A DNA stretch of 64,000 nucleotides, taken from the NCBI RefSeq assembly GCF_020745735.1, contig NC_083423.1, forward strand, positions 18,166,001 to 18,230,000, in the 5' to 3' direction. Origin of the DNA: Hemiscyllium ocellatum. Its lineage: Eukaryota. This document shows, one piece after another, positions 808 through 43,527 of this stretch. Both the position numbers and the translations under genes were made by a program. How positions within the stretch are numbered: the first letter of the stretch is position 1; the number at the start of each line of letters is the position of its first letter. Below the pieces are notes generated by a model. The model saw only the letters and a program-made list of their open reading frames with translations, was not told where the DNA came from and did not search any database.

Positions 808-853
808 TCACTTCTTCAGCTTCTTGCTCACTTGGTCGATTGCTTCTTTGATT
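808..853 (-). CDS. LGMN-like: Legumain-prodomain-like gene, last coding exon ((R)IKEAIDQVSKKLKK*)
   Basis: Acceptor tttgtctttgaacag|A; completes the phase-2 Arg codon from exon 5221-5288; aligns to the legumain C-terminus RIKLSMDHVC; TGA at 810-808. Confidence 0.8.
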
Positions 854-1030
854 CTGTTCAAAGACAAAGTGATTACAACAGCTCATTGACCAAGACAAAA
901 CACAGAAGAGATATCTAAAAGTAATATTTATTCTGCAGAAAATGCTGGACTTGCTTAGCAAATCTGGCAGCATCTGTGGAGAAGAGATTCAGAGTTAATG
1001 CTTCAGATTGATGAACTTTCAGAGTTTTTT

Positions 1031-1338
1031 TTAGATTAGACTTAGTGTGGAAACAGGCCCTTCAGCCCAACAAGTCCACACCGACCCGAAGAAGCGCAAC
1101 CCACCCATACCCCTACATTTACCCCTTACCTAACACTATGGGCAATTTAGCTTGGCCAATTCACCTGACCCGCACATCTTTGGACTGTGGGAGGAAACCG
1201 GAGCACCCGGAGGAAACCCACGCAGACACGGGGAGAACGTGCAAACTCCACACAGTCAGTCGCCTGAGTCGAGAATTGAACCCGGGTCTACAGGCGCTGT
1301 GAGGCAGCAGTGCTAACCACTGTGCCACCGTGCCGCCC
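1031..1338 (-). mobile_element. HE1-type tRNA-derived SINE
   Basis: Reverse complement of the ggcggcacggtggcacagtggttagcactgctgcctcacagcgcc head and (TCTAA)n tail; many copies in the window. Confidence 0.85.
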
Positions 1339-3049
1339 TTTAGTTCTGACTAAAGATTATTGAACTGAAATATTTACTCAGTTTCTCTCTCTACAGACGC
1401 TGCTTTAACTGCTACTCTAGTACTTGCTCTTTTATTTCAGGTTTCTGTGTAATTTGGCTTTTGGTTTATTCTGTAAGTGGGTGTACCACTGAAGTCCAGA
1501 TAGGGATGAACTTTGACAACAAATCAGATAATTTGATGGACCTGGTACTTTGAGACAAATGATTCAGTGAGCCACCAATTTTCAAAAAGCTTTATCAGAT
1601 TCAAGCTGATAACTTCTGCACTTCTCAATGCCTTAAATTTGTTGTGCAAATCCTATACAGCATTTTGTAGTGACATCTGGTAATATTTCAACAATTAATA
1701 CACTGACAGGATTTGCAATTTGGCCAGCCAGAATCAACAACTAAAAAGAGGTGTTAACTTTGGGGACAACTGGCCATGCTTAGGTTTCCCTGCTTGACGG
1801 CCAAGTTTGTCATTTGTTATACTCAAAGTTGATAGCTTGTTTCCCAGTTTCTGGGTAAGTAAATAATTTTGCAATAACTGAGGTAATAGATTTTCATTCA
1901 ACAGGGATATTATTGTCAGAATTGGAAATATCTGCACTTAGCACTTGTCACGATTACACCTTCTCGGCATTTATACAATTGAATTTACCCCATTTATTTT
2001 AGGAGAAAAGCTTCAGGACAATTTAATTGTATAAACTTTATATGGAATACACTGCACAGCAACAGGCATTTCACTAATCTATATGTAAATCTGAGATAAA
2101 TACAGAAAATACTGGAGTAGCCGATAGTGTGTCATCTGTGGTGACAGAATCTAGTCAATGTATCAGAGTCAATGCACCTTCATCAGGACCCTGAAAGGTC
2201 ATTAATCTGAAGGGTTAGCTCTGAATCTCTCTTCACAGATGTTTATTATCTACATGAGTCTCCTTTCATTTCTCTTGAAAACAAGAAGCTGCCTTAGTTT
2301 TTCAGCTTTGCCTTTGGTTCCTTTTGCTCTCATGTGATCCTCAGTTTGTTTTTGAAAGTACCTAAGTTATTTGCCTCAACCACAGTTGTCTTAAGAAAAT
2401 TAGCATTCCAATCACTGACTGAAGTTTCTAATTTTTCAATTGGATTCATTAGTAACCATCAAGTGATTGTTACATTTATCCTTCTAGTCTATTCATAATT
2501 TTAGAAAACATGATCAAGTCTCCTCTTTTCTTAGGAAAAAAGCTCAAACCTGTTATCTTTGTCACAGTTATGATCATTTAGTTCTGGTGCCACTCTTGTA
2601 CATCTTTTTATCATAAGGAAACCAGGAAAATTAAAGTACCCAAAGTGTGGCCCAACCAGGGTCTGATACAAATTTAGCATAACTTCACTATTTCATTCAT
2701 CCATCTCAGACACTGAAACAGTCCTTATTTTTGTTTTTAAGAAAGAATTTAACATCACCTCTTAGCATTCAATGACATTACCATTTCTGAATCTCCCAGT
2801 ATCAACATACTGGGAATTACAATTGACCAGAAACTGAGTTAGACTGGCAATATAAATACGACTAACCATATAAACATATGAATCCCACACAACTAACTTG
2901 GCTTCTGACTCCTATTCACCAATAACAAGGCATAAATCAGGAGTGTGATGGAATACTGACCACTTTCCTGGATAAGAGCAGCTCCAACAACATTCAAGAA
3001 GCTTGACATGATCCATTATAAAGCAGCCCACTTGATTGGCACCACATCC

Positions 3050-3785
3050 ACAAATATAGGATTAAAGACAGGATTCTTGGCAGTGTGGAGGAACAGAGGG
3101 ATCTGGGTGTGCAAGTACATAGATCCCTCAAAGTTGCTACCCAAGTAGATAGGGTTGTTAAGAAAGCATATGGTGTTTTGGCTTTCATTAATAGGGGGAC
3201 TGAGTTTAAGAGCCACGAGGTTTTGCTGCAACTCTACAAGTCCCTGGTGAGACCACACTTGGAATATTGTGTACAGTTCTGGTCGCCCTACTACAGGAAA
3301 GATAGAGGCTTTGGAGAGGGTGCAAAGAAGGTTTGCCAGGATGCTGCCTGGATTGGAGGGCTTGCCTTATGAAGAAAGGTTGAATAAGCTCAGACTTTTC
3401 TCTCTGGACAGGAGGAGGAAGAGAGGAGACCTGATCGAGGTGTACAACATAATGAGAGGAATAGACAGAGTCAACAACCAGAGACTTTTCCCCAGGGCAA
3501 GATGGACTGGTACGAGAAGTCATAGTTTGAAGATATTAGGAGGAAGGTATAAAGGAGATGTCAGAGGTAGGTTCTTTATGCAGAGAGTTGTGAATGCATG
3601 GAATGCGTTGCCAGCTGTGGTGGTGGAAGCAGAGTCACTGGGGACATTTAAGTGACTGCCGGACATGGATAGCAGTGAGTTGAGGGGTGTGTATGTTAAG
3701 TTACTAAATTTTACATTAGGATTAAATCTTGGCACAACATCGTGGGCCAAAGGGTTTGTTCTGTGCTGTACTTTTCTATGTTTTA
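3050..3785 (+). mobile_element. CR1 LINE 3' fragment
   Basis: ORFs 3085-3372 and 3269-3655 carry CR1 ORF2 C-terminal motifs (LYKSLVRPHLEYCVQFWSP, LERVQRRF, RGDLIEVY, FFMQRVVNAWNALP). Confidence 0.9.
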
Positions 3786-4109
3786 AACATTCTCCTCCTC
3801 CACCTCAGATGCTCAGTCTCACACTGTGTACAATCTACATGATGAACTACAGAAATACTCCATGGCTCCTTAGATATCATCTTCCAAACACACAAATCTA
3901 CCATCTAGGAGGGCAAGGGCAATAGGTACATGGGGCCATCACCACCTGCAAGGTCCCCTCTAAGTTACAATCATCCAGACTTAGAAATATATAGTCATTC
4001 CTTCAGTGATACTTGGAAACCACACACCACCCCACTGGTATTACAGGTCTACCTACTGCAAATTAACTGCTGTAGTTCAAGAACACAGCTCACTATCATC
4101 TTCTGAAAG

Positions 4110-4480
4110 GTGACCTTATAGAGGGCTATAAAATCATAAGAGGCATGGACAGGCCCAAGGTCTTTGTTCTAGGGTCGGAGGTCCAAAACTAGAGATCATG
4201 GGTTTAAAGTGAGTCGGGAAAGATTTAAAAATGACCTCTTGGGGATCATCTTCATGCAGAGGATGGTAGTGTATGGAACAAACTGCCAGAGGAAATGATG
4301 GAGGTGGGTACAATTACAGCATTCAAAAGGCATCTGGATGAGTATACGAATAGGAAGGGTTTAGAGGGATACAGGGCGAATGCTGGCAAATAGGACTTGG
4401 TCAGATTGGGATATCCGGTCGGCGTGAATGAGTTGGACTGAAGGATCTGTTTCTGTGCTGTATGACTATGATTCTATGGC
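4110..4480 (+). mobile_element. CR1 LINE 3' end fragment (degenerate)
   Basis: ggtgaccttatagagggctataaaatc...aggcatctggatg matches the other CR1 3' ends in the window. Confidence 0.75.
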
Positions 4481-4850
4481 AAATAGGACAGTGATAAAAC
4501 AATGGCTCATCCAGCAATGGCTCCACATCCCACTAATGAATTTTTAAAAATCTCTGAAGGTATATTTGAGTTTTGTTGACATTTTAATTGTTTTGCTGAC
4601 CTGCGATGCTGCTTTAATCATTTATTTACATTTATCCATTGATCTTTTTGCTTTTCTACATCTTTTTCTATATCTTGCTTTGTATTTTATGAGGTGTAAT
4701 TTATATTTCTCTTTGCCAACTAAAATATTACCTTATTTATGTTTAAATTTATTTGTCACTAATCGTCCACTCTATTTTCACCCTTCTTTTTGTATTATGT
4801 TGCATTGTTTCTCAATATTTCTTAACATCAGATCTTTCACTAGACATGGT

Positions 4851-5178
4851 GGGCGGCACGGTGGCACAGTGGTTAGCACTGCTGCCTCACAGCGCCTGAA
4901 GACCCGGGTTCAATTCCCGACTCAGGCAACTGACTGTGTGGAGTTTGCATGTTCTCCCCGTGTCTGCGTGGGTTTCCTCCGGGTGCTCCGGTTTCCTCCC
5001 ACAGTCCAAAGATGTGTGGGTCAGGTGAATTGGCCATGCTAAATTGCCCGTAGTGTTAGGTAAGGGGTAATGTAGGGGTATGGGTGGGTTTCGCTTCGGC
5101 GGGTCGGTGTGGACTTGTTGGGCCGAAGGGCCTGTTTCCACACTGTAAGTCTAATCTAATCTAAGTCTAATCTAATCT
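4851..5178 (+). mobile_element. HE1-type SINE, full length
   Basis: A-box-like TGGCACAGTGG, B-box-like GGTTCAATTCC, (TCTAA)n tail. Confidence 0.9.
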
Positions 5179-5220
5179 TAACTTAATATCCAAGTATGCA
5201 GTTGTTGAGTAATACTGTAC

Positions 5221-5288
5221 CGTGTCAGTGGGACCCGCTCTTCGCATAAATTGACAAAGGCACTCAGCTGGTGACGAGCATATTCATA
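5221..5288 (-). CDS. LGMN-like: Legumain-prodomain-like gene, 68-bp exon (YEYARHQLSAFVNLCEERVPLT(R))
   Basis: ctgttgttgcag| acceptor and |gtacag donor; phase 0 to 2; aligns to legumain [23 protein letters not shown]. Confidence 0.9.
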
Positions 5289-7959
5289 CTGCAACAACAG
5301 AACCACAGATAAACAATTCTACATGGTATCAACATTAGTTACAATAATGAGATGCTCTAAAATGATAAAGGAATTGAATACAAAAACAGAAATTGCTGCA
5401 AAAACTCAACAGGACTGGCAGCATCTGTGGGAAGAAAGCAGAGTTAATGTTTTGAGTCTGGTGACTCTTCATCAGAACTGTTAGCAGCTAGGAAAGGTGG
5501 TACTTATGCTGAAATTAAAGTTGGGGGGCCAAGAGAAGAGGCCAAGCAATACATCTTATTTTACGCTTGAAAACCCTGCAGCCTCTAGGACTCAACATTG
5601 AGTTCAATAAGTTGAGAGATTGATTCCATCCTTCCATATTTTCTTTTACTTACTCCACACCTGATCCTGTTATAACATGGGTTGCTTTTAGCACAGTCAC
5701 CTATTCACATTTACTCCTAGGCCCATTATCACATTATATGGGTTGTATTCAGTACAGCTTACATAGTATCTCCTACTTTTAGTTCTTATTATCGCTTATC
5801 TTTTCTTCTATCTTGGCCTGCTATCCATAATCTCCTGGTTAACCTATCCCTTTCATATCTCTCTCTGGACTCCAACCCTCCATATCCCCCACCCAACTTC
5901 AGTATCAATGCCACTTTTTCCTAGCCGTCATCAGTTCTGATGAAGAGTCACCAGACTGGAAACATTAAGTCTGCCTTCTTCCCACAGATGCTGAGAGACC
6001 TGCTGAGTTTCACCAGCAATGTGTTTTTGTTTCAGATCTCCAACATTTACAGTTCTTTGTTTTACTTTAATGAATTGAGTAAATGGTAAACTTTGTACTT
6101 TTTTTGCTAACTATTTCCATTTACAAAACCCTTGTAAACAAAAAAAAAAATTTTCCAAACCAAATTGGAATGATAAACATAGATGCACCAACAGGCAAAA
6201 AGGAGAGAAACTGGAAGGCTGTTTATAGGATTCCATGGAGATCAGCATTCAATTCTTTGTCTTTCGTGGAATGCATCGATGATTTGGACTTAAATGTGAT
6301 GGAATGACGAAGAGGTTTGCATGATACAAACTTTAGCCCTGTGATTGATAGTGATTCTGTTGACTGTATGGAGAGATCAATAGATTGATCATTTGGGAAG
6401 AAAAGTGATAAATTTAAATCAGTCTTGAGAAGAATTAAGTAATACATTTGAAGACAGCAAGACACAGGATAGGATTTCGGACAGAAATGCAGACTCATTG
6501 ATCCCTTAGAAAAGCAGAAAAGATAAGTAATATGATTAAGGCAACATACAATTGACTTGCATTTTGTCTTTGTTGATAAAGGGAAAGTTATGCTTTGGAT
6601 GGTATGAAACACAAGGTAAATAACGTGGAACTCAGTACTGACCAGAATAGTCTGCATTTAATGCCATACTTTATTAAGCTAACTGATCTCAGAGGGTTAG
6701 AGAAAGAAAAAATTCGATTTGAGTGCACTCTCCTACTCTTGGTCCAGTGACCCTGATTTAAAAGTGAATTTGAAGAAAAGGGGGACCAGAGAGGCAAGCA
6801 ACAAAATTAACTAAAAAGAAAATCATACAAAAATACAGATCCCAACAACTGGCAAAAACAGAAGGAACAAAGGGTGAAAAAAAATAGTAAGAAAGAGCTA
6901 CAAAAAGATAGTACAAAGAAATTAAGAGATTCAAAAATCTCAATATTTTAATAATTCAATGGATAACAATAAGGAAATAGCACACTGTTCAATAATTACT
7001 TTGTGTCAATGTTTACAGGAGAGGAATTAGTCAGCTGGCCAAATTAATTGTTAATGAGTAAGGGACAGGGACTCAACAAAATTGACCTAAAAAGAAAATA
7101 ATGGCAGGAAATGGTAACAAATCCTCACGGCCAAATGGCTTCTCTCTCAGGTGTTATGATTAGAACACACAGAAGGTTATTAATCTGAAAACTTAACCCC
7201 ATTTTTCTCTCCCCTCAGATGGTTCCTGTTGAGTTTTTCCAGCATTGTCAATATTTTGCTTTTAAATAATCCCTCAAAGTGCTACTGATTTAGGAGACAC
7301 ACCTACAGACTGGAAACTGCACATGATACTCCAAAGAGTATCCACAGTCCAGATAGACAGCTCATTAAAATGTCAACAGCAGAAAATAATCAAGTAGGCT
7401 AGACTACTTGTCCTTCTGTATCGAGGAATGAAATACAAAAAAAGGAGATGCCATGCTTCAGCTATACAAAAACCTGGTTAGAAGACACTGGTAGTTCAGT
7501 GAGCAGTTCTGGCTACCATACCTTATTAGGATACAGTAGCCTTGGAAGAAGTGGAATGTAGATTTACCAGAATGATTCTAAAATGGTGGACTGAGAGTAG
7601 CAGATGCTCAAGGAAGAAAACAGCACAGGAACAGGCCATTTGACCCTCCAAGCTCGCATTGGCACACCCTGTCCTTCCATTCTAAAGATATCTTCATTTA
7701 CAGGATCAGCATCCCTCTATTCCCTTCCTATTCGTGAATTTGCCAAGACGTTTCCGGAATGCTGCTATTGTGTCTGCTTCCACCACCTGCTCTGGCAGCG
7801 TGTTCCAAACACTCACCATTCTTTGTGGGAAAACTTGCTTTGCACATCTTTTTTAACACCCCCCCAGCACCTCCCCCCAACCCCCAAGCCCACACTCTGG
7901 TCCTGTGTCCCTACTAATTGACCCTTGCACTCTGGGAAAAAGCCTCATACTTTCCACTT

Positions 7960-9185
7960 TATCCATGCTATTAACAATCTTATCAACTTCTTTCAGGTCA
8001 CCCCTCAGATCCTTCTGTGTTCCAGTGAAAACAAACCCAGTCTATCCAACCTTTCTTCATAGCTAAAATTTCCCATGCCAGGCAACATCCAGATAAACTG
8101 TTTCTGTATCATCTCCAAAGCATCCACATCCTTCTGGTAGTGTGGTGACCAGAAATGTGTGCAATATTCCAAGTGTGGCCTAACTAAAGTTCCATAAAGT
8201 TGCAGCATAACTTGCTTATCCTTACATACAATGCCATTTCCAATGAAGGCAAGCATGCCATAGGCCTTTTTGTGACCTTACTGCCACCTTCAGTGATCTG
8301 TGGACCAGCACATCCAGATCCCTCTACATATCAACACTCCCAAGGGTTCTGCCATTCACTGCATAATTTCCATCTGTACCTGACATTCCAAAATGCATCA
8401 TCTCACATTTGTTTGGATTAAACTCCAACTGCGATTTTTCTGCCCATGTCTCCAATTGATCCATATCCTGCTGTATCCTCTGACAATTCTCCTCACTGTT
8501 TGCAACTCCATCAATCTTTGTATCATCCATAAACATACTAATTAGACCAGTCACATTTTCCCAAATCATTTATGTAGGCTATGAACAGCAGAGGTCCCAG
8601 CACTGATCCCTATGGAACACCAGTAGTCGCAACTCTCCATTCTGGAAAGCATGCTTCCACTGCTACCCTCTGTCTCCTTTGATGAAACCTGTTCTGTATC
8701 AATCTTACCAGCTCACCTAATGCCATGTTACTTTACCTTTTGTACCAGTCTGCTACGAGGGACATTGTCAAAGTCTTTACCGAAATCCATGCAGACAACA
8801 TCAATCTCTTTTCCCTCAATCATTTTCATTACCACCTCAAAAAAAAACTCAATCAAGTTAGTGAGACGTGACCTCGTCCAAACAAAACCTTGCCGTCCCT
8901 TGCTAATAAATCCATTTGCTTCTAAATGCGCCTAGGTCTTGTCCCTGAGAATCTTTTCCAATAATTTCCCTGCCACTGACATGAGGCTCACAATCCTGTA
9001 ATTTCCTGGATTATCCCTGCTACCCTTCTTAAACAATAGGATAACATTGGCTATTCTCCAGTCCTGTGGGACCTCACCTGTGGCTAAAGAGGATATAAAG
9101 GTGTCTGTCAACGCTTCAGCAATGTGTTCTCTTGCCTCCCTCAATATTCTGGGATAGATCCCATCGGGACCCAGGAACTTATCTT
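7960..9185 (-). mobile_element. CR1 LINE ORF2 (RT) fragment
   Basis: Minus-strand ORFs with GPDGIYPRILRE, PGNYR.VSL.SV.GKLLE, FMDDTKI and LVRPHLEYC motifs. Confidence 0.9.
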
Positions 9186-9186
9186 G

Positions 9187-9515
9187 AATCATAGAAATCC
9201 GACAGTGTGGAAACAGATCACTTGGCCCAACAAATCCACACCGACCCTCCAAAGAGTAACCCACCCAAACCCATTCCCCTATCCTATTGCTCAAGATTTA
9301 CTCCTGATTAATGGTCCTATCTTATACATCCCTGAACACGGTGGGCAATTTAGCATGGCCAATTCACCTCAACTGCACATCTTTGCATTATGGGAGGAAA
9401 CTGGAGCACCCAGAGGAAACCCACGCTGACCCAGGGAGAATGTGCAAATTCTACACAGACTGTCGTCCAATGCTGGAATCGAATCCAGGTCAGAGGCAGC
9501 TGTGTTAACCACTGA
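9187..9515 (-). mobile_element. HE1-type SINE (diverged)
   Basis: Similar to the copy at 1031-1338. Confidence 0.75.
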
Positions 9516-9600
9516 ACTACATTAATATTTTTTAAGACACACAACACTTTCTTTTTAAAAGAAACTTGATGCTCCTGAGATTCAGACTTATTTCTAGATT

Positions 9601-10790
9601 TAGAACATTAAACACAGAACGTTACAGCGCAGTACAGGCCCTTCAGTCCTTGATGTTGCGCCGACCTTAGAAATTAATCTGATGCCCATCTAACCTACAC
9701 CATTCAATTATTACCCGCATATCTGTCCAATGCCCATTTAAATACTCTTAACGTCGGCAAGTCTACTACTGTTGCATGTAGGCCATTCCACACCCCTACT
9801 ATTTTGAGTAAACAAACTACCCCTAATATCTGTCCTAAATCTATCACCCCTCAATTTAAAGCTATGTCCCCTTATGTTAGCCTTCACCATCCAAGGAAAA
9901 AGGCTCTCACTGTCCACTCTATCTAACCCCCTGATTACCTTTATGTCTCGATTAAGTCACCTCTCAACCACCTTCTCTCCAATGAAAACTGCCTCAGTGC
10001 CCTTATAAGACCTTCTTTCCATACCAGGCAACATCCTAGTAAATCTCCTCTGAATCCTTTCCAAAGCTTCCACATCGTCCCTATAATGCGGTGACCAGAA
10101 CTGTCCATAATATTTCAGGAGCAGCCTTACCAGTGTCTTGTACAGCTGAATTATGACCTTGTGGCTCCGAAACTCAATCCCCCTACCAATAAACGGCAAT
10201 GTGCCTTCTTAACGATCCTATCAACCTGGGTGGCAACTTTGAGGGATTTATGCACCTGGACACAGATCTCTGTTCATCTACACTGCCAAGACTTTTACCA
10301 TTAGCCCAGTACTTTGCATTCCTGTTACTTCATCCGAAGTGAACTACCTCCATTTGCCACCTCTCAGCCCAGCTCTGCATCTATGTCCCTCTGTAACCCA
10401 CAATATCCTTTGGCACTATCCACAACTCTTCCTACCATCTTCTACGTCCACCTCCAGATCAATTATAAAAATGAGTAACAGCAGTAGCCCCAAACAAATC
10501 CTTGCAGCATACCACTGGTAACTGAGCTCCAGGCTGAACGTTTCCCATCAACCACTGTCTTCTTTCATCTAGCCAATTTCTGATTCAAACTGCTAAATCA
10601 CCTTCAATCCCAAAACTTCAGTTTGTGCAATAGCCTACCATGTGGAACCTTATCAAGTACCTTACTGAAGTCCACGTACATCATATCAACCACCCGAACT
10701 TCATCCACCTATTTTGTCACCTTCTCGAAGAACTCAGTAAGGTTAGCGAGGCATGACCTAACCGTCATTTATCTCTAATCAAATTATTCC
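9601..10790 (-). mobile_element. CR1 LINE 3' fragment
   Basis: ORF 9957-10199 (QLYKTLVR..FWSPHYR.DVEALERIQRRFTRMLPG) and degenerate RT further right. Confidence 0.85.
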
Positions 10791-10824
10791 TTTCCAGATG
10801 ATTATAAATCCTCTCTTATTACCG

Positions 10825-11870
10825 TTGCCAACATTTGTAACATCGATAGTCACAGGTGAGGTGCCGGAAGACTGGAGGTTGGCTGATGTGGTGCCACTGT
10901 TTAAAAAAGGTGGTAATCACAAGCCAGAGAACTACAGACCGGTGAGCCTGACTTCGGTGGTGGACAAGTTGTTGGAGGGAATCCTGAAGGACTGGATGTA
11001 CATGTATTTGGAAAGACAAGGACTGATTAGAGATAGTCAACATGGCTGTATGGGTAGGAAATCATATCTCACAAACTTGATTGAGTTTTTTGAAGGAGTA
11101 ACAAAGAGGATTGATGAGGGCAGAGTGGTGGATGTGATCTATATGAACTTCAGTAAGGCATTCGACAACTTTCCTCATGGGAGACTGGTTAGCAAGGTTA
11201 GATCTCATGAAATACAGGGAGAACTAGCCATTTGGATATAGAACTGGCTCAAAGGTAGAAGACAAGAGGGTGGTGGTGGAGGGTTGTTTTTCAGACTGGA
11301 GCCCTGTGACCAGTAGAGTGCCACAAGGACCAATGCTGGGTCCTCTACTTTTCATGATTTATATAAATGATTTGGACGTGAGCATAAGAGGTATAGTTAG
11401 TAGGTTTGAGATGACACCAAAATTGGAGGTGCAGCAGACAGCGAAGGAGGTTGCCTCAGAATACAACGGGATCTTGATCAGATGGGCCAATGGGCTGAGA
11501 AGTGGCAGATGGAGTTTAATTTAGATAAACGTGAGGTGCTGCACTTTGGGAAAGCAAATCTTAGCAGGACTTATACACTTAATGGTAAGGTCCTGGGGAG
11601 TGTTGCTGAACAAAGAGACTTTGGAGTGCAGATTCATAGCTCCTTGAAAGTGGAGTCGCAGGTAGATAGGATAGTGAAGGTGGTGTTTGGTATATTTTTC
11701 TTTATTGGTCAGAGTATTGAGTACAGGAGTCGGGAGGTCATGTTGCAGCTGTATAGGACATTGGTTAGGGCACTGTTGGAATATTAAGTGCAATTCTGGT
11801 TTTCTTCCTATCGGAAAGATGTTGTGAAACTTGAAAGGTTCAGAAAAGACTGTCAAGGACATTGCCAGGG
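10825..11870 (+). mobile_element. CR1 LINE RT fragment
   Basis: ORFs 10798-11241 and 11482-11787: VVPLFKKG, NYRPVSLTSVV, TNLIEFFE, DFSKAFD-like motifs. Confidence 0.9.
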
Positions 11871-12505
11871 TACCAACTCATACTGCAAGTTCACCCATCT
11901 TACTCTGGATGCTCCTGGCATTGAAGTACACACATTTTAAACCAACTTGATTGCCGGTGCTCTCTCCCGATCTTGTAAATCTATCCCTGATCTCACTACC
12001 CTGAACCTCCTGTACATTGTAACTACAATTCAGGTTCCCATCCCCTTGCTGCATTAGTTTAAAGACATTTCTTTTAGATTTCTTACAGGTTTTAAAAGAA
12101 ATGTTTACAGGGATATGGACCAAGCACAGGCAGGTAGCACTAGTTTAGGATTATGGTTGGCATGGACTGGTTAAACCAAAATGAGGCAAAATTATTTCTG
12201 CTCATTGGGGAACATAGGACCATGGAGCAAGGTCAAAAAAGAAAAGCCAACTTTTACAGGTGTGAAATTAAGACATACATCTACACTCAAAATATGGTAG
12301 AACTTTGGAACTGGTAATTGCTGAGTCAATTGTTGATTTTAAATTTGTTCAGGGATATGGAGCAATGGTGGTCAAATGGAGTTAAGCCACAGATCAGTCT
12401 AGATCTTACTAAGTGACTGAACAGACTTGAGGGACTCATGACTGTGTTCTATTCGCAGGTTGGTTTTCTTCTGGTCAGTCACTAAATTCCAGTGACACCG
12501 CATAC

Positions 12506-12676
12506 CTCCTGCTTGTGCCAGTCAAAGCACTCAACTCGGAAATATTCCACTGCAGCATGATAGTTTTCCTTCTCCGTGAGGTGCTGTTTAGTTGCAAGGA
12601 TACGTTCAGCTTGTTCCTCAGAGTCTGCAGCCAGTTTAACGATCTCCTGTACTGTCTGGCGGATCAATTCCCTTGT
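12506..12676 (-). CDS. LGMN-like: Legumain-prodomain-like gene, 171-bp LSAM exon (TRELIRQTVQEIVKLAADSEEQAERILATKQHLTEKENYHAAVEYFRVECFDWHKQE)
   Basis: ttattacattacag| acceptor and GAG|gtatgc donor; phase 0-0; aligns colinearly with legumain [27 protein letters not shown]...FRTHCFNWHSPT. Confidence 0.92.
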
Positions 12677-12974
12677 CTGTAATGTAATAAATTTGTTAGT
12701 TACACCTCAACCACCTCAGAAGGGATTGACTGTGACTAAATCTACCATTTTACTCTCCTTTCAACCAAAACAACCATGTAAACTGCTGAGGGCTCAGGGG
12801 ATTGTCTGGTGTTAGCAACTTCATACTGCAAAGTAGGTCGGCATCAACAACCCACAGCCAGGTAGTTCCCAGTTCTATCACTACCCAATCCGTCACCAAA
12901 TAATAATATTCAGTCACTTGTTGCAAAGAGAGTAAATGAGTACCAGAAGGGGAAGATCCCACTTGTTCAGTTAC

Positions 12975-13125
12975 CTCAAGGAGCTTGTCCAATTCTTTCT
13001 GAAGCTTCGCTGTCTCCTCAGGGTTCTTGGCAGCTTTGATCCGATTCTGAAGGATAGCAACAGGCACATCACACTGTGCCAAAGCCTCCATTCTGGCAAT
13101 TGACACACTGGATATCCACCAGAAC
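12975..13125 (-). CDS. LGMN-like: Legumain-prodomain-like gene, exon homologous to the activation-peptide/LSAM junction (..MEALAQCDVPVAILQNRIKAAKNPEETAKLQKELDKLLE)
   Basis: GAG|gtaact donor; DVPVAILQNRI aligns to legumain DVPLTIMKRKL. In-frame TGA at 13139-13137 limits the exon; best acceptor is gattgtcccacag|13125; strong-context ATG (gccagaATGG) at 13091. The 5' boundary is less certain than the 3'. Confidence 0.8.
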
Positions 13126-13877
13126 CTGTGGGACAATCAATCAATCACTAGATGACCCTCAACTTCCACAAGATGATATAGGGCTCACCAATCCAAGAGG
13201 AAAGCCCAAGGAGTCTCAACAATTATCCAGCCGGCTTTTGAACATGATGGTAATTAAGACAAGATACTCAATGCAAAGACCCTAATCAGAACTGGGTCAA
13301 AGGGTAGCAGAGATTAACTTGTAACCTTTTGTAATTTTCAATGTCTATAGTAGAATTTTGTCATATTAAATAGTTTTTTTAAAGAAAAAGATTGTGAATA
13401 CATTGAATATAACTTGGAACCAGGCTTAGTCACTGGCTCCCACACTGTGCACACAGGCTAGTGAGAACATTGACAATGCTTAAAGAAAGGGGTGGATTTA
13501 TGCAGAATCTCCCTCAACCTCAGTATATTTCAAAGTATTTTAGAATTCAGTAAGTATTTTTTGAAGTGTAGTTTTTGTTGTGGGAAACAGCAGGCAATTT
13601 GCACACAGATAATCAACAGCAAACTCTTTTGGTGATGATGATTTACGGATAAATATTAATGGGGACACAAGATGCCACTGGTAAGGCTGGAAAGCACCAC
13701 TTCAAACAGATACTAATGCACAGATGTTGAACTGATTAAGTGAAATATTCTGACACTTTGGGATCTGGCTGGTGACCAGAGAAAAAAGCAAAATTGAAGG
13801 CTGAACATTTACAGATTGTAACTACAGATCACCAAAGAAAATATTTAAAATTATGACAATGTGTGACAATCATGCAA

Positions 13878-14128
13878 TGGGCAGCACAGTGGTTAGCACT
13901 GCTGCCTCACAGCACCAGTTCCCACCTCAGGCAACTGCCTGTGTGGAGATTGCACATTCTCCCCGTGTCTGCGTGGGTTTCCTCCAGGTGCTCCGGTTTC
14001 CTCCCACAGTCCAAAAATGTGCAGGTCAAGTGAAGAGGTAAGTGTAGGGGAATGGTTGCGCTTCAGCAGTTCGGTGTGGACTTGTTGGGCTGAAGAGCTT
14101 GTTTCCACACTAAGTAATCTAATCTAAT
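13878..14128 (+). mobile_element. HE1-type SINE (internally deleted)
   Basis: gcacagtggttagcactgctgcctcacagc head and ctaatctaat tail. Confidence 0.8.
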
Positions 14129-14681
14129 CTCATATGTCTAAACACAAAATAACAGTAAGGTCACAGGCATAATGTTACTATCTCTAAAGGGAGAATTCAA
14201 ACCACGATCCCTCTGAGGATGAGTCACTGGACTTAAAACAATTCTGATTTCTTTCCATAGATGCTGCCACACCTGTTGAGCTTTTCCAGCAACTTCTGTT
14301 TTTCTTGTCCTTGATCCCTTTGTCTCTGTTAGAAACCAGACACCCACCACTTCATCATATGTCATCACTAGGATATCAGTCAAATGTCACAGTGAATGTG
14401 AAATGGGAACATTGCTATTCAATCCTGTCTGTCCCATTTGAATTCTACTGATCACTAGCAGCATCAATATAGCTAAATCAGACAATCATTTAACTTTATG
14501 TAAAGTATCTCAACAGTTTGTTTACTTAGCATTTTTGAACTCAAATATATATCGCACTGTGTAGTTGACTTTAATACATAGGTGCTAAGAGGATGTCTTC
14601 CCTTTATGGAAGAGTCAAGGACCAAAGGTCATAATCCTAGAGTAAGAGTCCATTCATTTAAGGCAGCGATGAGAAGGAATG

Positions 14682-14970
14682 ATAGAATTCCTACAGTATC
14701 AAAACAGGCTATTTGACCCAACAAGTCCACACCGACCGTCTGAAGAGTATCCCACCCAGACCCATTCCCCTACCCTATTACTCAAGAGATTTTCCATGAC
14801 TAATGCACCTAACCTACAAATCCCTGAACATTACGGACAATTTAGCATGGCCAATTCACCTGACCTGTAATCATTAAGATTGTGGAGGAATCACAGCCAC
14901 CCAAGGCTGGAATCAAAGCCAGGTTCCTGGCACTGACAGGCAACAGTGCTAACCACTGAGCCATCATGCT
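14682..14970 (-). mobile_element. HE1-type SINE (diverged)
   Basis: Similar to the other minus-strand copies. Confidence 0.7.
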
Positions 14971-15603
14971 TCCCCATGGAATTATCTATCACAGTGGGCT
15001 GAGGGAGTGCCATTCTATATACTGAAAGTGTGATAGGCAAGTTTTTAATCAGTAAAAGAATCATGATTTATAAGGTAATGGTAGGAAGGTTCAGTCGAGG
15101 ATTCTCAGATCAGCTCTGATCTGTCTGAATGACGGGCCGAATGGCCTGCTTCAGCTTAAGGCACTGTCTTTCAGGAACGTAGACAGGCAGGATTCTGGAA
15201 GAACACAGCAAGCCAGGCAGCACCAGGTGGAGAAGTCGACGTTTTGAGTGTAACCCTTTGGATTTCAGCATCTATAGTTTTTTTTGGTCTATAACCAAGT
15301 CTTTCACTGATAGTAAGGGGCGCCACGTCGAGTCATAATTTTAAAACCAAGCTTGATAAATGCTCTATAGACTAAAGGTATCCGGGCATCTGAGGTAAAG
15401 GTAGTTTCAGTATGCGAAGTTAAATCGCAGATCAGCCACTGAGTGCAGGCAGGGAGTAACCTTCCTGTTCCCATCTTGTGCAGCAATGTTCCAAACTCCA
15501 CCCTCCACACTCAGGCAAATCCTTTTATATTATCCAACCTGAAAGTCCACCTTACCTCTGGATAAACAATCTACTTTCAGCTTCTGTAATTTTGCAAACT
15601 CAC

Positions 15604-15780
15604 GCAACCAAAGGGAAGTTGCAGGCTCCGGTGAAACTCTCTATACTCCACCTTCCCAGGACAGCAGCCCGTGACAAACAGGTGACCATCCCAAACCCAC
15701 AATGCACCACGCACAAGGCGGAGATAGACCACTTTACCCGTGACGTCATCGTGCGGGGCGGTCGCCGCCATTTTCGATCC
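15604..15780 (-). promoter_or_regulatory. CpG-rich promoter-like segment and putative first exon of the legumain-prodomain gene
   Basis: Perfect CRE TGACGTCA at 15741-15748, GC box GGGGCGG at 15755-15761, YY1-type CCGCCATTTT at 15765-15774, locally high CpG, and a minus-strand donor TGC|GTGAGT at 15604/15603. Direction of transcription is not proven. Confidence 0.5.
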
Positions 15781-16199
15781 CATGACTGTTCCGGGGTCTT
15801 CAATAAGAGAACATACCATCACTGAAGTGGATGTGGAATCCAAATATATTGACTTATTTACGAATAATTGTAACTACAAAATGTTGCATTTTAGATGTGC
15901 ACCATATGTAATAATTTTTACGTAACAAGACCTATTTTTATATGAGCAATTCCATTATTGAAATGAAAAATAGGATACTTTGTGAAATATTTCACTTTTA
16001 CTTTTATTTAAGTCAACAAACCATGATAAACCATATTGAAGTTCTCACCAAGTCAATTTCGAGTAGAAAGGTTGACATAAAAATAGCGACAGGAATGTGT
16101 TTGGAAGTTGTTAAATACGGACACAGGTTCCTTTTAGTTCAAATTAAAACACATCAACTAAATTTAAAGAAGGCAGTAAATCCAAATAATGGAACAGAT

Positions 16200-16475
16200 T
16201 CACAGCATCATAGGATCTCTACAGTGTGGACAAAGGCCATTCAGCCAATTCACATCAACCCTTCAAAAAGCATCCCATCCAGACCCAAACCCCTTACCCT
16301 ATCCCTGCATCTCCCATGATTAATCCACGAACCTGCACATTTTCAGACTGTGTGAGGAATGCCACACAGACATGAGATAATGTAAACTCCACATGGACAG
16401 TCACCCAAGGGTGGAATTGAACCCCAGTCCCTGGCAGTTTGAGGCAGCAGTGCCAACTACTGAGCTACTATGCCA
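16200..16475 (-). mobile_element. HE1-type SINE (diverged)
   Basis: tctacagtgtgg...ggcagcagtgc matches the other copies. Confidence 0.7.
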
Positions 16476-18216: not shown

Positions 18217-19080
18217 ATGAGTAAAGGGAAGGGAACAGGCGGCTCTAAGAAAGCAGGGACCCCTCCGCCACCCTCTCCCTCTTCAGCTGCAACAAAGGTG
18301 TCTTCAGCTACTTCAGGAGATTTACCAATGAAGATGAGCTTTGAGGAGATGTTTGCCAGGTGGGAGGCGAAGATTGATGCTTTTATCGATGAGTCTCGGC
18401 AGAGCAGAGAAGCACTATCAGCCGAGCTGCAGAAGCAGGGCAGAGACATTCAGGAATTGGAGTGCCGAGTCAGAGAGGTGGAGTCGAAGGCCGCAGCCTC
18501 AGAGACTGGGATAAAATCAACAGCCGACCACATCCGTTTTCTCGAGAATCGAGTCCAGAACCTAGAAAACCACATTGATGACCTTGAAAATCGATGTCGT
18601 AGAAAAAATATTCGGTTGTTGGGCCTGCCCGAGCAGGAAGAGGGAGGTCAGCTGACAGCATTCTTAGAGCATTGGCTGCCACAACTTTTAAATCTGCATA
18701 ATGGATCAGGCCAGGTAAGGGTAGAATGGGCCTACCGGGTCACAGTACGTGGGCCCGGCTCAACCCAGCGCCCACGCCCGGTCCTGTTCCAGCTGCAGAG
18801 CTATAGGGAGAGGCAGATGCTCCTGGAAGCCTCAAGAAATCTGGGAAAAGATCCCCAAGCTATGACCCACAAAGGATCCAGGATCATGCTGTTCCAGGAC
18901 TTCTCCCCAGCTTTGGTCCGAAAGAGGAAGGCATTCGATGAGGCGAAGAAGCGTTTAAGGGACTTAAATATCCAGTACTCCTTACGATATCCAGCGACGC
19001 TACGCCTTAGCCACGAAGGATCCATATATAACTTCGGATCACCAGAGAAGGCTAAGGAATTCTTGGACTCTCTTAAATAA
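18217..19080 (+). CDS. L1 ORF1p (287 aa; coiled coil, RRM, CTD), intact
   Basis: Heptad-rich region followed by DDLENRCRRKNIRLLGLPE, RPRPVL and FQDFS..L..KRK motifs typical of L1 ORF1p. Confidence 0.9.
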   Translation: MSKGKGTGGSKKAGTPPPPSPSSAATKVSSATSGDLPMKMSFEEMFARWEAKIDAFIDESRQSREALSAELQKQGRDIQELECRVREVESKAAASETGIKSTADHIRFLENRVQNLENHIDDLENRCRRKNIRLLGLPEQEEGGQLTAFLEHWLPQLLNLHNGSGQVRVEWAYRVTVRGPGSTQRPRPVLFQLQSYRERQMLLEASRNLGKDPQAMTHKGSRIMLFQDFSPALVRKRKAFDEAKKRLRDLNIQYSLRYPATLRLSHEGSIYNFGSPEKAKEFLDSLK

Positions 19081-19710
19081 ACTGTAAGAGATTGTGGACG
19101 TTGGTCTGCCTTTCCCATTATTTTGGTTTACATCCCTTCAACTTTTCTTATCTTTCCCCCTATGTGTGTATGTGTATATATATATATATATATATAGGGG
19201 TGTTTGGTTAATGTTGATGGGGAGAGGTGGTTACCTTATTCTATTTTACTTCTGTTTTTAGGAGCGGGGTTGTTTTTCTTTCCCCTGTTATTTTGTGGTA
19301 TTATATTTAAGTATTACATGTTGAGATTGTAATCTTATAGTTATATATGGTATTAATATTCCCAAATATATTTAGATGTGGGTGTGGGTGGGGGTGGGGT
19401 GTTCACTGTTAACTCTAGCTTTATATTATATTTGAATTCTCCTCATTTTATTGAGGAACACCTGGGTCAAGGGTGGGGCACTGGTTGGAAGAGGGTAAGA
19501 TGGACTGTGGGAGAGGAAGTGACGCTCCCTGGGAACAAGGGAGAAAATCTCCAATTCGGAATGTTTTATATTTTTTATACTTAGAAAGAGTTTTTTGTTA
19601 TATTGTTTTGAGTGTATCAGAGAGTCTTTACTTTTGTAAATCTTGTATGTTCCATGCTCGGGATGTTCTAGATAGGGTTTCCCCTCCCGAGGGGTCTCGG
19701 ATCTGTCCAG

Positions 19711-22700
19711 ATGATTATGGCTGAACAGTCGGTTAAGTGGTGCACCTGGAATGTCAGGGGGAGTAATTCGCCAGTTAAAAGGAAGAAAATATTATCAAAT
19801 CTTAAGAAGGAGAGAGTTGATATAGCTCTCCTACAGGAGACACACCTGTCGGATAAAGAACACTTAAAATTACGACAGGGCGGATTTGATCAGGCCTTTT
19901 TTTCCTCTTTTAATTCAAAAAGCAGGGGAATCGTTATCCTTGTCCGGAAGAACTTCCCTTTGAAAATTCTAAATCAGATAAAAGACGAATCTGGACGATA
20001 TATTTTGATTAAAGCCCTCATAAATGGAGAGGAATATGGGATCTTAAATGTATACTGCCCCCCGGCACACCCCTTTAAATTCATAACGGAAGCTTTTTCA
20101 AAACTGATGGCCTTTGGTGCCCGTCATACAATTATAGGGGGAGACTTTAATTGTATTATGGATCCGGAAAAGACAGGATTCCCAAGAGTGCTGCTGGAGT
20201 ATCTCCCAGATCTAGACAACTGGCAGACCTGAATAAAGAATTAGGATTGGTAGATGTATGGAGATGTCTCCATCCACAGGGTAGAGATTTTTCTTTCTAC
20301 TCTAATCCACATAAATGTCACACAAGAATTGATATGTTTTTTGCCCCATCGATTTTTCTAAACTCTATAGCAACCTGTAAAATAGGTACTATAGCAATCT
20401 CTGACCATGCCGCTGTATACATGGAAACTAAGGTAAAGAACAATGGGACATCTGCTCGGCATTGGCGTATGGACCCCTTCCTGATAAAAGATAGCAAATT
20501 TTTAAAGTACTTCTCCCACGAACTTAAAACTTTTTTAGAAATTAATACTGGTACGGCTAGCAATCCGTCAATGATGTGGGAGTCCATCAAAGCTTATGCA
20601 CGAGGTTTGATCATCTCCTATTCAGTGACCCAGAGGAAAATGAAGGGAGAGCAACAGCGTCTGCTCGAAGCTCGCCTAAAAGCAGCCGAAACAGCATACG
20701 CTGATAGACCTTCCATCACAAAATTGCAGAGGATTACAGCTCTTAGGACAGCTTTAAACACCGCGCTTACTCAAACGGCTAAAAGGGAAATATTATTTGC
20801 GAAACAAAGATTATATGAATATGGCGACAAACCGGGTAGATACTTAGCATTTCTTGCAAAGAAAAAGAAAGCCCCTCAAACTATTCCGACCATCAAGGAA
20901 AGTACAGGTACCCTGACTCATGATCATAAAAAGATCAATGCGACCTTTAAAGAATTTTATTCTGAACTATATAGATCGCAGGATTGTGAAGATAGGATTA
21001 GGAGGATGCAGTCATTTTTAAAAAATTTGACCTTCCCGGGCCTGACTCCGGAACAGGTGTCGGCCCTAAATACCCCTTTAACAGTCCAAGAAATACTTGA
21101 GGCAATTAGGCAACTTCAGAGCGGAACAGCACCGGGCCCGGATGGTTTTCAAGCTGAATTCTATAAAGAATTTACAGGAATATTGGTTGACCCACTTATG
21201 GATATGTATAATTTTGCGCATAGTCAGGTCTGTCTCCCGCCCACGCTGAAAGAAGCAAATATTTCTCTTATCCTCAAAAAAGGAAAAGACCCAGAAGATT
21301 GTGCATCTTACAGACCAATATCCTTACTAAATGTAGACTTTAAAATTCTCTCAAAAATGTTAGCACTAAGACTAGAAAGGGTACTGCCATATATTATAAA
21401 GGAGGACCAGACGGGATTTATTAAGGGCCGCAGATCATCCAATAATATCAGAAGGGTCTTGAATATGATCCAAGCCTGTCATCAGGGAAAGATACCAGGA
21501 GTAGTAATTTCATTGGATGCGGAAAAGGCATTTGATAGGGTTGAATGGTCATATTTATTTTACACATTGGAAAGGTTTGGCATTGGACAGGTGTTTACCA
21601 AATGGGTTTCAACATTGTATAATGACCCCAAAGCAGCTGTTATTACTAACGAGTTAAGATCGGATGGCTTCAGTGTGGGTAGGGGCTGCCGTCAAGGATG
21701 TCCTCTCTCACCATTGTTGTTTACACTGATAATCGAACCATTAGCAGAAGCCATCCGGACTGATCCTAATATAACGGCCCCGAGGATTGGTACAGGTAAA
21801 CACAAAATTACCCTCTATGCAGATGACGTTCTCTTATTCCTCAGTAATCCTTTAATGTCAGTGCCTCGTCTAATTCAAGTTATTAATACATTTAGTGCAT
21901 TCTCAGGCTATAAAATTAATTTTTCAAAATCGGAAGCCATGCCAATGGGTTGTCTGGCTATGATACCCCACTTAATGGACGGATCCCCTTTTCCCTTCCG
22001 TTGGTCCCTGGAGGGCTTCTTATATTTAGGTATTTTTATCATGCCAGTATTTGATCAGCTGTATAGGGCTAATTTTGTACAATTAATGGAAAGGATAAGG
22101 CAGGACCTCCAGCGATGGAGAGACCTTCCGATTTCCTGGCTAGGGAGAATAGCATTAATTAAAATGAATGTTCTGCCCCGTCTCTTATATCCTATGAGAA
22201 TGCTCCCGCTGATGCTGCCAAGGCTAGCCCTACGTAAATTATATGGCTGGTTGGGCTCCTTTATTTGGAACCATAGACGGCCCCTTATTAAGCTGAAGAA
22301 GCTACAGCTTCCACAGGCAAGGGGAGGATGGGACTTCCCAGACTTTAGGAAATATCAGTTAAGCTCCCTACTAAGTTACATAGCTGATTGGGTTTCATCT
22401 GATCCACAATCAATTTGGCTGGATATCGAAGCCTCCCAAGTAAAATACCCACTTATTAACCTTTTATTTTCAGATAAGAGGAAAATCATTACAGACCACT
22501 GTAAAAATCCCATAATATTAAACACAATTAAGGCCTGGAATATAATGCGGCAAAATGAGGGTAACTCACATAAAACATCCCCCCATGCACCAATAGTAGG
22601 CGCATGGGGATTCCAACCGGGGATTACAGATGCCACCTTTAAACTCTGGAGATCCAGGGGCATCTCATGCTTAGGGGACCTATTTAAAGATGGGATCCTG

Positions 22701-23523
22701 ATGTCATTTGAGCAGCTGCGTCTGAAATTCGGAATACCTAATGGGGATCTCTTTTGATACTTCCAAGTTCGAGATTATATACAGAGGAAGACTACATTAA
22801 TAGATAGTCTTTATAAATCAGACAGAGAACGTAATGTCTTACGACCAGCGGGGGCATCCTCCGTCAGTACTATATACCATTTGCTACATGATGGAGTCTC
22901 AGGAGACATGGATGACCTGCTTAAAACATGGGAGCAGGACTTGGGGCTAGAAATCTCTGAGGATATATGGAATGACATTTGGGAAAATGCTAGAAGAATT
23001 GCTATCTGTAACAGAACTCAGGCTATCCAACTAAAGATACTTCATAGGGCCCATATAGCTCTGGCTCGACTGGCAAAATTTAAGGCAGGAGCATCTCCAA
23101 TGTGTCCTAAATGCAAAATAGAGGTGGGTACTCTTGTACATTGTCTGTGGACTTGTCAGAAAATCCGCAGATACTGGACTAAAGTGGCAAATACCCTGAC
23201 AGAAATTTTAGGAACGGAAATTAGGGTGGACCCTGTATCTCTCCTTTTGGGCTTTTCGAACCTCTCATCTCTGGATATGCATGGGAAGAGACTATTTTCT
23301 ATTCTCTCTTTCTGTGCAAGGAAAAATATTTTGGTGAACTGGGTGGCTGAGGGCCCCCCCTGGACTTTCAAATTGGCACAGATTAATTATGGAATATATC
23401 CCCCTTGACTTCCTCACAAATATGGTGCACCGAAAGACTGAATTATTTTATAAAATATGGCAGCCCTTTTTGAATTATATAAATGCGGATATTTCGGCTA
23501 TCCTAACAAGGGCTTTTATTTAG
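19711..23523 (+). pseudogene. L1 ORF2 (endonuclease, reverse transcriptase, CCHC) with three lesions
   Basis: WNVRG, LLQETH, IGGDFN, SDHA (APE); APGPDG, YRPISL, DAEKAFD, QGCPLSP, YADD (RT); CPKC..HCLWTC. Frameshift near 20168, in-frame TGA at 22755-22757, frameshift in the C-run at about 23354-23360; probable true stop TAG at 23521-23523. Confidence 0.9.
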
Positions 23524-34557: not shown

Positions 34558-34912
34558 CTAAATGGGCAACTTTGAAGTGCTAAATGTAGACTTGCTTCCA
34601 ACTGCTATCATTGCTTTTTTCAACAGAAATTTGTTTATACTTTCCTTAATGTTTCCCACCCTATTCTTTATCATCTGGTCTGTTATTTCAGTCTCATCTC
34701 CAAGATCTTTCAGTATGGACTTCATGATGGTTTGAAGCCATTCCTGGTTATACTCCTTGCTTTGAGAGTGTAACTCATTTATCTGTGTTTCAACCCGGAG
34801 TAACAAATCTTCATCTTCTATGATTTTAGTGACAATCTTCAGATGCTGTTGCATCTCTTTGATTTGTTGAATGTTCTTCAGTCCATCGTCACTGAATTCA
34901 TTTACACACAAA
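34558..34912 (-). CDS. Ig-TM-NLR gene, terminal coding exon: last LRR ((Y)LCVNEFSDDGLKNI) plus about 100-aa helical tail
   Basis: Acceptor ttgtcttcccattttcag|; phase 2 completes TA|T (Tyr), giving LEKLYLCVNEFSDDG (LxxLxLxxNxFxDxG); stop at 34560-34558. Confidence 0.85.
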
Positions 34913-35319
34913 CTGAAAATGGGAAGACAATTATAATTAGCAAAAACGTTAACCATTCATAAATCCTCACAAAATGTGTGATGATCAGAAATATCAGAAA
35001 GAACTGTATAGAGGAACAAAGAAAATCAGAGAAGGAGTAGGTCATTGGATCTCTGAGCCTGCCCAACTATTCAACTAGATCATCGATGAATTTTGACCTC
35101 AATGTCATTTTCCCATTCTACAATGCTCAAAATATATGTCAAAACTGTGGAATTTGTCATGATACCACTAAAGATTTCTGGGACAATTTAATCACTGGGG
35201 CAACCTAAAGTGCCTTCTGCTGGGATTAAGCTTTTCAGCAGAAACACAGAAACTAGGTGCAGGAGTTTGGCCTTTTCAGCCTCCATCGCCATTCAACATA
35301 ATCATGCAATCTCAATATC

Positions 35320-42914: not shown

Positions 42915-43527
42915 CTGCCACTTTTGTTAAGGAAGGGCTTTGTGTTGGAATAATGGAATATTTTCATTTACTGAAGAAGTATAGTGCAAAATTGCTTTAA
43001 TTCTGAATAATGGTGCAAAGGGAAAAAATTGCTGTTTTGTTGATTGAATTTAAATGTTCATATGTTTATTTGTGTGATTCATGACTTGGGGCTTAATTAA
43101 CTGTACATTCGTCCTGTCATGATTATAGCAAATACATATTTAAGTTTATGTGAGACTTACAGCAGACCTTGCCATCAATGTATTTTACAGCAAACTAACC
43201 AAACAGTAAGGCAAACAAAGTGAATTTAGAAATACTTTTTAAAAAGAATCTCTGAAATATAGCAGAAAAACCTATAGCAAAGAAATCCAATCACATATTG
43301 CAGTGTACGTTTCAGGCATAATTGATAGGGTATTGTACAAATTATCTCCACGTGGAACGTGACACAATGCAGGCATTAAATTTGATCAGGGCAGAACGGA
43401 AGCAGAAATGCATGACAAAGGGAAACACAGCGAAAGATGGTACAGGGCAAAGCACCCAAATGCAAAATTTTATTCCTTGCAGATTGTAAACCTGTTGCTT
43501 TAAATTCTTATGAATGATATTACTCAC

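Follow-up and report, generated by a model that had tools for sequence, protein, structure and literature searches.

Whether the C-terminal prodomain of legumain can exist as a gene of its own, without the protease, is the question raised by a locus on the minus strand of a 64-kb stretch of DNA (here called the window) from the epaulette shark, Hemiscyllium ocellatum. An initial annotation had proposed that four exons in this window encode the activation peptide (AP) and the LSAM module of legumain as a stand-alone protein. We find that this is a real gene, intact, expressed and conserved across elasmobranchs, and the proposal of a prodomain gene without a protease is borne out by an exact RefSeq match, elasmobranch orthologues, purifying selection, spliced mRNAs and the failure of our searches to detect catalytic exons. 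The gene is already present in RefSeq and UniProt under automatic names ("legumain-like"); full-text literature searches returned no paper on a free-standing gene for the legumain prodomain and no study of the fish legumain-like (LL) family.

The four coding exons, A to D, lie where the initial annotation had placed them, with intact splice sites and phases (Table 1). Splicing from the ATG at 13091 uses canonical sites throughout and gives the predicted product of 133 amino acids (aa), which is identical over all residues to XP_060699104.1, a RefSeq protein of Hemiscyllium ocellatum named "legumain-like." This entry sits in the 90% cluster of our best protein-search hit, and its recorded coding sequence (CDS) spans 12,284 nt, equal to 13091-808. 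The in-frame TGA at 13139-13137, at which legumain homology had been said to stop, is present just 5' of the exon A acceptor and is intronic.

We compared the exon boundaries with those of medaka LGMN and a sturgeon legumain-like gene, each of which has 13 coding exons. The boundaries of exons B, C and D coincide with those of the last three coding exons in both genes, exon B having those of the legumain exon that spans medaka aa 343-398, exon C those of the penultimate exon and exon D those of the last. Of the 69-71 codons in the matching legumain exon, however, exon A covers just the 50 at the 3' end; its acceptor is thus new, having arisen within the older exon at the linker that precedes the activation peptide. 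The earlier claim of homology to the last four legumain exons thus stands for three of them and needs amending for exon A, a partial exon with a new acceptor. Exon A encodes an N-terminal tail and the activation-peptide helix (DVPVAIL...) and matches positions 279-328 of the profile hidden Markov model (HMM) described below, and exon B alone, compared with PDB legumains, matches residues 330-383 of 4fgu (E 6e-7).

Orthologues were sought by a protein search seeded with the exon A open reading frame (ORF) and then with its best hit. Proteins of 133-141 aa containing PF20985 only are annotated in at least 18 elasmobranch species, five batoids among them (Pristis, Rhinoraja, Narcine, Mobula and Hemitrygon); the shark orthologues are from Chiloscyllium, Stegostoma, Rhincodon, Cetorhinus, Mustelus, Scyliorhinus, Heterodontus, Pristiophorus and Heptranchias. 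Identities among the orthologues of 67-95% exclude annotation copies of a single sequence. When we rebuilt the CDS in Chiloscyllium punctatum and Pristis pectinata, the exon lengths, phases and AG/GT sites were the same as in the window. The ratio of nonsynonymous to synonymous divergence (dN/dS, Nei-Gojobori method) was 0.22 for Hemiscyllium versus Chiloscyllium and 0.12-0.15 for shark versus batoid (dS ~1.0, dN 0.12-0.14), with an overall range of 0.12-0.24. Across 16 species, 54 of the 133 residues are invariant. We conclude that the gene is under purifying selection, which rules out the neutral pseudogene fragment against which the initial annotation had suggested a dN/dS check across sharks.

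To look for catalytic exons, we searched the window and three related loci (C. punctatum, L004; Pristis, L005; Albula, L006) by tBLASTn, with 13 and then 10 full-length legumains or legumain-like proteins as queries, and with a profile HMM (414 positions, 99 full-length sequences) applied to every six-frame ORF of at least 12 aa. Neither method found a catalytic exon in the 64-kb window or the three related loci: only profile positions ≥278 were matched, and positions 1-277, which represent the caspase-like Peptidase_C13 domain (PF01650) with its His-Cys dyad, had no match in any frame. That the locus holds no legumain catalytic domain, as had been noted from motifs, is therefore upheld. At the Albula locus, an unrelated epimerase-family gene ends 2 kb 5' of the short gene, and there is no catalytic exon within 10 kb on either side; a tBLASTx comparison of this locus with the shark loci matched the prodomain exons only. 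The Albula counterparts of exons C and D fall within ~130 nt of each other (12094-12225 of L006), a spacing that suggests that the last intron was lost or is very short.

The ORF of a batoid orthologue (P0013) is uninterrupted on three independent RNA-run assemblies (Logan contigs) of ~1.3 kb each, indicating that the mRNA is spliced. One RNA contig carries an in-frame TGA 36 nt 5' of the first ATG. Two contigs begin ~65-72 nt 5' of the ATG, the first with a SMART template-switch oligo and the second with a Nextera adapter, and these adapter-marked starts point to a short 5' untranslated region (UTR). In C. punctatum, isoform X1 (165 aa) joins an exon derived from a short interspersed nuclear element (SINE; 9122-9183 of L004) to the exon A acceptor, which shows that the acceptor is used and that at least one upstream exon exists. 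A counterpart of the SINE-derived exon is present in the window, although the H. ocellatum annotation does not include it, and its use in H. ocellatum would be expected from its annotation in C. punctatum X1.

The initial annotation had also considered a coding extension to 173 or 193 aa, from an ATG at 15689 or 15749 to a donor at 15604. We found this extension to be unsupported. Against C. punctatum the stretch shows 8 nonsynonymous versus 1 synonymous codon changes, compared to 6 versus 7 in the main CDS, a pattern like that of non-coding DNA, and it is absent from all orthologues. What ends at this donor may at best be a promoter followed by an untranslated first exon. The ratio of observed to expected CpG is 0.5-0.77 at 15.0-16.2 kb (15000-16250), compared to 0.07-0.28 nearby, making this the only enriched patch of the neighbourhood.

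The 133-aa product matches Pfam PF20985 (Legum_prodom) with 40.1 bits (cut-off 25.2) over profile positions 1-96 of 97. An AlphaFold2 model based on a 31-row alignment is all-helical (predicted local distance difference test score, 83.6), and its top Foldseek matches are the prolegumains 4nok, 4nom and 4fgu (template modelling [TM] score 0.86, root mean square deviation [rmsd] 1.4-1.7 Å). It superimposes on the C-terminal part of prolegumain over 122 residues, the activation-peptide helix included, with an rmsd of 1.4 Å, so the structure prediction that the initial annotation had proposed as a check agrees with its assignment. Although LSAM has been called death-domain-like in topology (PMC7489914), Foldseek searches of the PDB and AFDB clusters returned legumain prodomains only at E < 1 and no death domain (DD), caspase recruitment domain (CARD) or pyrin domain (PYD), with the reservation that Foldseek is weak on small helical folds.

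Several residues set the elasmobranch proteins apart. Alignment columns 77, 89 and 111 hold Cys in all canonical and invertebrate legumains of our set, and column 128 does so wherever the residue is present; for columns 77 and 128 this amounts to 14 of the 14 proteins having a residue there. All 16 elasmobranch proteins instead have Asn77 and Ser128 (the latter encoded by exon D, where legumain has its final disulfide Cys), retain Cys89 and Cys111, and possess an extra invariant Cys7. They therefore lack two of the four cysteines of the two LSAM disulfides, which with the human pairing takes away one partner of each disulfide; the human legumain residue numbers used are C378, C390, C412, C429, R342 and R403. 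The [S/T]-N-D autocleavage site, which has N-D in all canonical vertebrate rows of the alignment, is K-D-P in 11 of the 16 elasmobranch species and K-N-P in H. ocellatum. V9, P10 and R41 are kept across the short, LL and canonical proteins, in line with the trans-binding role proposed below. The N-terminus (MEALAQCDVP...) contains no hydrophobic stretch as judged by eye and from homologues. An ESM Atlas feature search yielded noise only (scores < 0.8).

We placed the gene with a maximum-likelihood tree of the prodomain only. The elasmobranch proteins, three short bony-fish proteins (Albula goreensis KAI1902697.1, Pygocentrus XP_017554107.1 and Acipenser RXM93072.1) and the full-length LL proteins of ray-finned fishes form one clade (97/92) whose sister group is canonical vertebrate LGMN (98/90). 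A signal peptide is missing from the LL proteins (in sturgeon LL the Peptidase_C13 profile begins at residue 8), and they keep the catalytic motifs without the same two cysteines that the elasmobranch proteins have lost. On this sequence evidence the gene is not a canonical LGMN but a member of a legumain-like lineage that lacks the signal peptide and is poor in disulfides. The order inside the clade is weak: elasmobranch and bony-fish short proteins group at 69/36, and alternatives have p ~0.4 in the approximately unbiased (AU) test. The short bony-fish proteins are probably orthologues of the shark proteins. Branches of the elasmobranch proteins are far shorter than those of LL or canonical prodomains.

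The LL family is multi-copy in ray-finned fishes (gar, sturgeon, bonefish and Otophysi), with proteins of 405-430 aa carrying the motifs DHG and ESC(H/C)SGS and neither of the LSAM disulfides; many begin with MGxxxS/K, a possible N-myristoylation signal. AFDB also holds a 161-aa "Legumain prodomain domain-containing protein" (S4RNK1), with 37% identity and a TM score of 0.93. Its accession pattern suggests that it is from lamprey; whether fragment or further prodomain-only gene, either origin is possible.

Two explanations would deny the locus the status of a stand-alone functional gene. A transcribed but unselected partial duplicate of a legumain gene would look like a 3' gene fragment with introns full of transposon debris, as this one does, and might well have lost two of four disulfide cysteines. 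Such a non-functional relic is effectively refuted by the low dN/dS, by an ORF and splice sites preserved in at least 18 species whose lineages have been apart since sharks and batoids split, and by cysteine losses that are invariant rather than scattered, on branches much shorter than those of other prodomains. The four exons could otherwise be the terminal exons of a larger gene, with catalytic exons beyond the window or splicing to the upstream NLR gene, which is on the same strand and was thought to end at about 34.5 kb; the use of the exon A acceptor, with the upstream exon that this entails, is in keeping with such a gene. We regard this as very unlikely, since the 5'UTR of the batoid mRNAs is short and holds an in-frame stop, a template-switch oligo marks their 5' end, RefSeq models are 133-141 aa long in many species, and the only longer isoform, X1, adds a SINE-derived exon. 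There is also no catalytic exon in the 51 kb upstream in the window or in 10 kb at the three other loci, and in Albula the epimerase-family gene intervenes 2 kb upstream.

As to what the protein does, we propose that it is a trans-acting, propeptide-like binder of a C13 (legumain-type) catalytic domain and is cytosolic or nuclear, a reading to which we give about an even chance. The activation-peptide helix and LSAM would be laid over the C13 active site in trans, as the covalent prodomain is in prolegumain, and at neutral pH would either inhibit the enzyme or stabilise it. The partner could be canonical legumain that reaches the cytosol or, if sharks have one, a cytosolic legumain-like protease. 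Because the Asn autocleavage site is replaced, the usual Asn-directed self-processing would not remove the shark protein. The apparent absence of a signal peptide, the lost disulfide cysteines and the grouping with signal-peptide-less LL proteases suggest a cytosolic protein. To our knowledge, covering the active site is the only job of the activation-peptide helix. Binding in trans is suggested because this helix is as conserved as the LSAM core (mean pairwise identity of 82%, compared to 84% for the best LSAM segment) and because LSAM can stay bound without a covalent link: after cleavage it remains non-covalently associated with the catalytic domain, which it stabilises at pH > 4 (PMC9788469; for the two-chain state, PMC7489914).

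Several points weigh against a trans-acting C13 binder. Binding and inhibition by the shark protein are predictions, and the cytosolic C13 partner in sharks is hypothetical. Canonical legumain is an endolysosomal enzyme, and a cytosolic protein would encounter it only if it leaked out or was translocated. In the LSAM "double arginine," the shark protein has His for the second Arg (R403 in human numbering). The net charge is slightly acidic (isoelectric point [pI] 5.5-6.5 in most species), whereas descriptions of human LSAM give it a positive charge; a crude charge count is variable among canonical prodomains too, and neither net charge nor pI of the prodomains discriminated between groups. Finally, that the protein lacks a signal peptide is a judgement made by eye, with homologues as a guide, and not a predictor's call.

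If the protease-related role has been lost, the protein may instead be a neofunctionalised, death-fold-like adaptor with other cytosolic or nuclear contacts, for example in cell-death or innate-immune signalling. We consider this a real though lesser possibility. Consistent with it are the death-domain-like topology of LSAM (PMC7489914), the invariant, elasmobranch-specific Cys7 together with the loss of the disulfides and of the Asn cleavage site, the retention of the gene for hundreds of millions of years with no linked catalytic gene found, and its position downstream of an NLR gene in the window. The linkage does not extend to Pristis or Albula, where no NLR is seen within 10 kb, and the flanking DNA examined around the genes of Pristis and C. 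punctatum showed no NACHT similarity. An adaptor also fits poorly with the strong conservation of the activation-peptide helix, which is outside the globular LSAM core, and with a Foldseek result limited to legumain prodomains. A dimerisation decoy of the microProtein type, pairing with the AP-LSAM of full-length prolegumain or LL zymogens and tuning their activation, is decidedly unlikely in our judgement. Plant prolegumains do dimerise, staying latent, through an alpha6/alpha7 four-helix bundle of AP-LSAM (PMC7489914), and both helices are present and confidently modelled in the shark protein, but control of human prolegumain is described mainly as LSAM covering the active site (PMC9788469), and a decoy would face the same compartment problem as the trans-acting C13 binder that we prefer.

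A broader scenario can be sketched, although we hold it to be rather doubtful. The LSAM-only gene would be an ancient invention of jawed vertebrates, common to elasmobranchs and early-branching ray-finned fishes, and would form a two-gene module with the cytosolic, signal-peptide-less LL proteases (a non-lysosomal clan CD protease plus decoy, as with caspase-1 and the CARD-only proteins) that disappeared in tetrapods and has so far escaped study.

Among papain-like, subtilisin-like and caspase-1 proteases there are known cases of propeptides with genes of their own; we found none described for legumain. The shark protein is a natural disulfide-free AP-LSAM module of ~15 kDa that has been under selection since at least the shark-batoid split, and it could reveal how an isolated prodomain acts at neutral pH. 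In cancer and neurodegeneration, the escape of legumain into the cytosol and nucleus is of importance (PMC9579014, PMC9788469). The disulfides of human LSAM hamper bacterial production (PMC12320161), and the shark protein might be easier to express and serve as a scaffold for legumain modulators. Our analysis also brings out a family of fish legumain-like proteases that are apparently cytosolic and have gone unstudied.

The remaining features of the window are listed with the exons in Table 1. The introns of the legumain-like gene are filled with many reverse-transcriptase fragments.

Table 1. Features of the legumain-like gene and its surroundings in the window
Feature	Position	Strand	Details
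Coding exon A	13125-12975	minus	34 nt of 5'UTR after the acceptor, ATG at 13091, 39 codons; acceptor AG 13127-13126, donor GT 12974-12973
Coding exon B	12676-12506	minus	57 codons, phase 0/0; first LSAM helices
Coding exon C	5288-5221	minus	22 codons + 2 nt (YEYARHQ...NLCEE...); AG 5290-5289, GT 5220-5219
Coding exon D	853-808	minus	1 nt + 14 codons + TGA 810-808; AG 855-854
Putative SINE-derived alternative 5' exon	13911..13957	minus	own ATG at 13957; donor CT/GTGAGG; in frame with exon A; counterpart of C. punctatum X1 exon
Candidate promoter and non-coding exon 1	15604..15800	minus	YY1-like motif AAAATGGCGGCG and perfect cAMP-response element (CRE) TGACGTCA at about 15740-15775; strong donor GC/GTGAGT at 15604/15603
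Long interspersed nuclear element (LINE)	18217-23408	plus	ORF1 of 287 aa; endonuclease/reverse-transcriptase ORF2 broken into 173, 868 and 175 aa
Helical ORF	34561-34956	minus	132 codons, no family match; the "NLR 3' end" of the initial annotation
NLR gene	43524-45296	minus	590-codon ORF with NACHT, NOD2_WH and NLRC4_HD2; same strand as the legumain-like gene
Immunoglobulin V-set exon	55856-56317	minus	Pfam V-set, E 1.7e-12; 5' of the NLR gene

Among known systems, the closest is the AP-LSAM of legumain itself (MEROPS C13; 4fgu, 4nok), with which the shark protein shares homologous sequence (PF20985, 40 bits), fold (TM 0.86) and the last three exon boundaries, and it begins at the linker where prolegumain is processed (D303/D309 region, PMC9788469). 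In contrast to that module it is encoded alone, without an apparent signal peptide and behind a new exon A acceptor; it has Asn and Ser for one Cys of each disulfide, K-D-P (K-N-P in H. ocellatum) at the Asn323-type autocleavage site, and the invariant Cys7. The full-length LL proteins (XP_026877345.1 of Electrophorus, XP_030630733.1 of Chanos, and those of gar and sturgeon) belong to the same prodomain clade (97/92), have lost the same two Cys columns and end in a similar C-terminus (...RIK.AI..VS...). They differ in keeping Peptidase_C13, with DHG and ESC(H/C)SGS, in their 405-430 aa, and their prodomains evolve much faster. The short bony-fish proteins, 42-46% identical to the shark protein, are its nearest relatives outside elasmobranchs, although their N-termini are poorly annotated and the cysteines that they retain differ.

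The CARD-only proteins ICEBERG/CARD18, COP/CARD16 and INCA/CARD17 are products of partial duplicates of the gene for caspase-1, a clan CD protease, and act as decoys or regulators of the parent enzyme. Like the shark gene, theirs are stand-alone prodomain genes derived from a clan CD protease, and the prodomain has a death fold; unlike it, they encode an N-terminal recruitment domain, not a cover for the active site, with no sequence relation to LSAM, and they are primate-specific and young, whereas the shark gene is ancient. The propeptide-like inhibitors of families I29 (CTLA-2alpha, crammer and BCPI; PMC4089206, PMC3551606) and I9 (subtilisin propeptide-like; PMC6993865) come from the N-terminal propeptides of papain-like and subtilisin-like enzymes and have unrelated folds, and inhibition has been shown for them, whereas it is predicted for the shark protein. 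As in these families, however, the shark gene is a free-standing gene that encodes a protease propeptide alone, and their trans inhibition of the cognate enzyme is the mechanism that we propose for its product.

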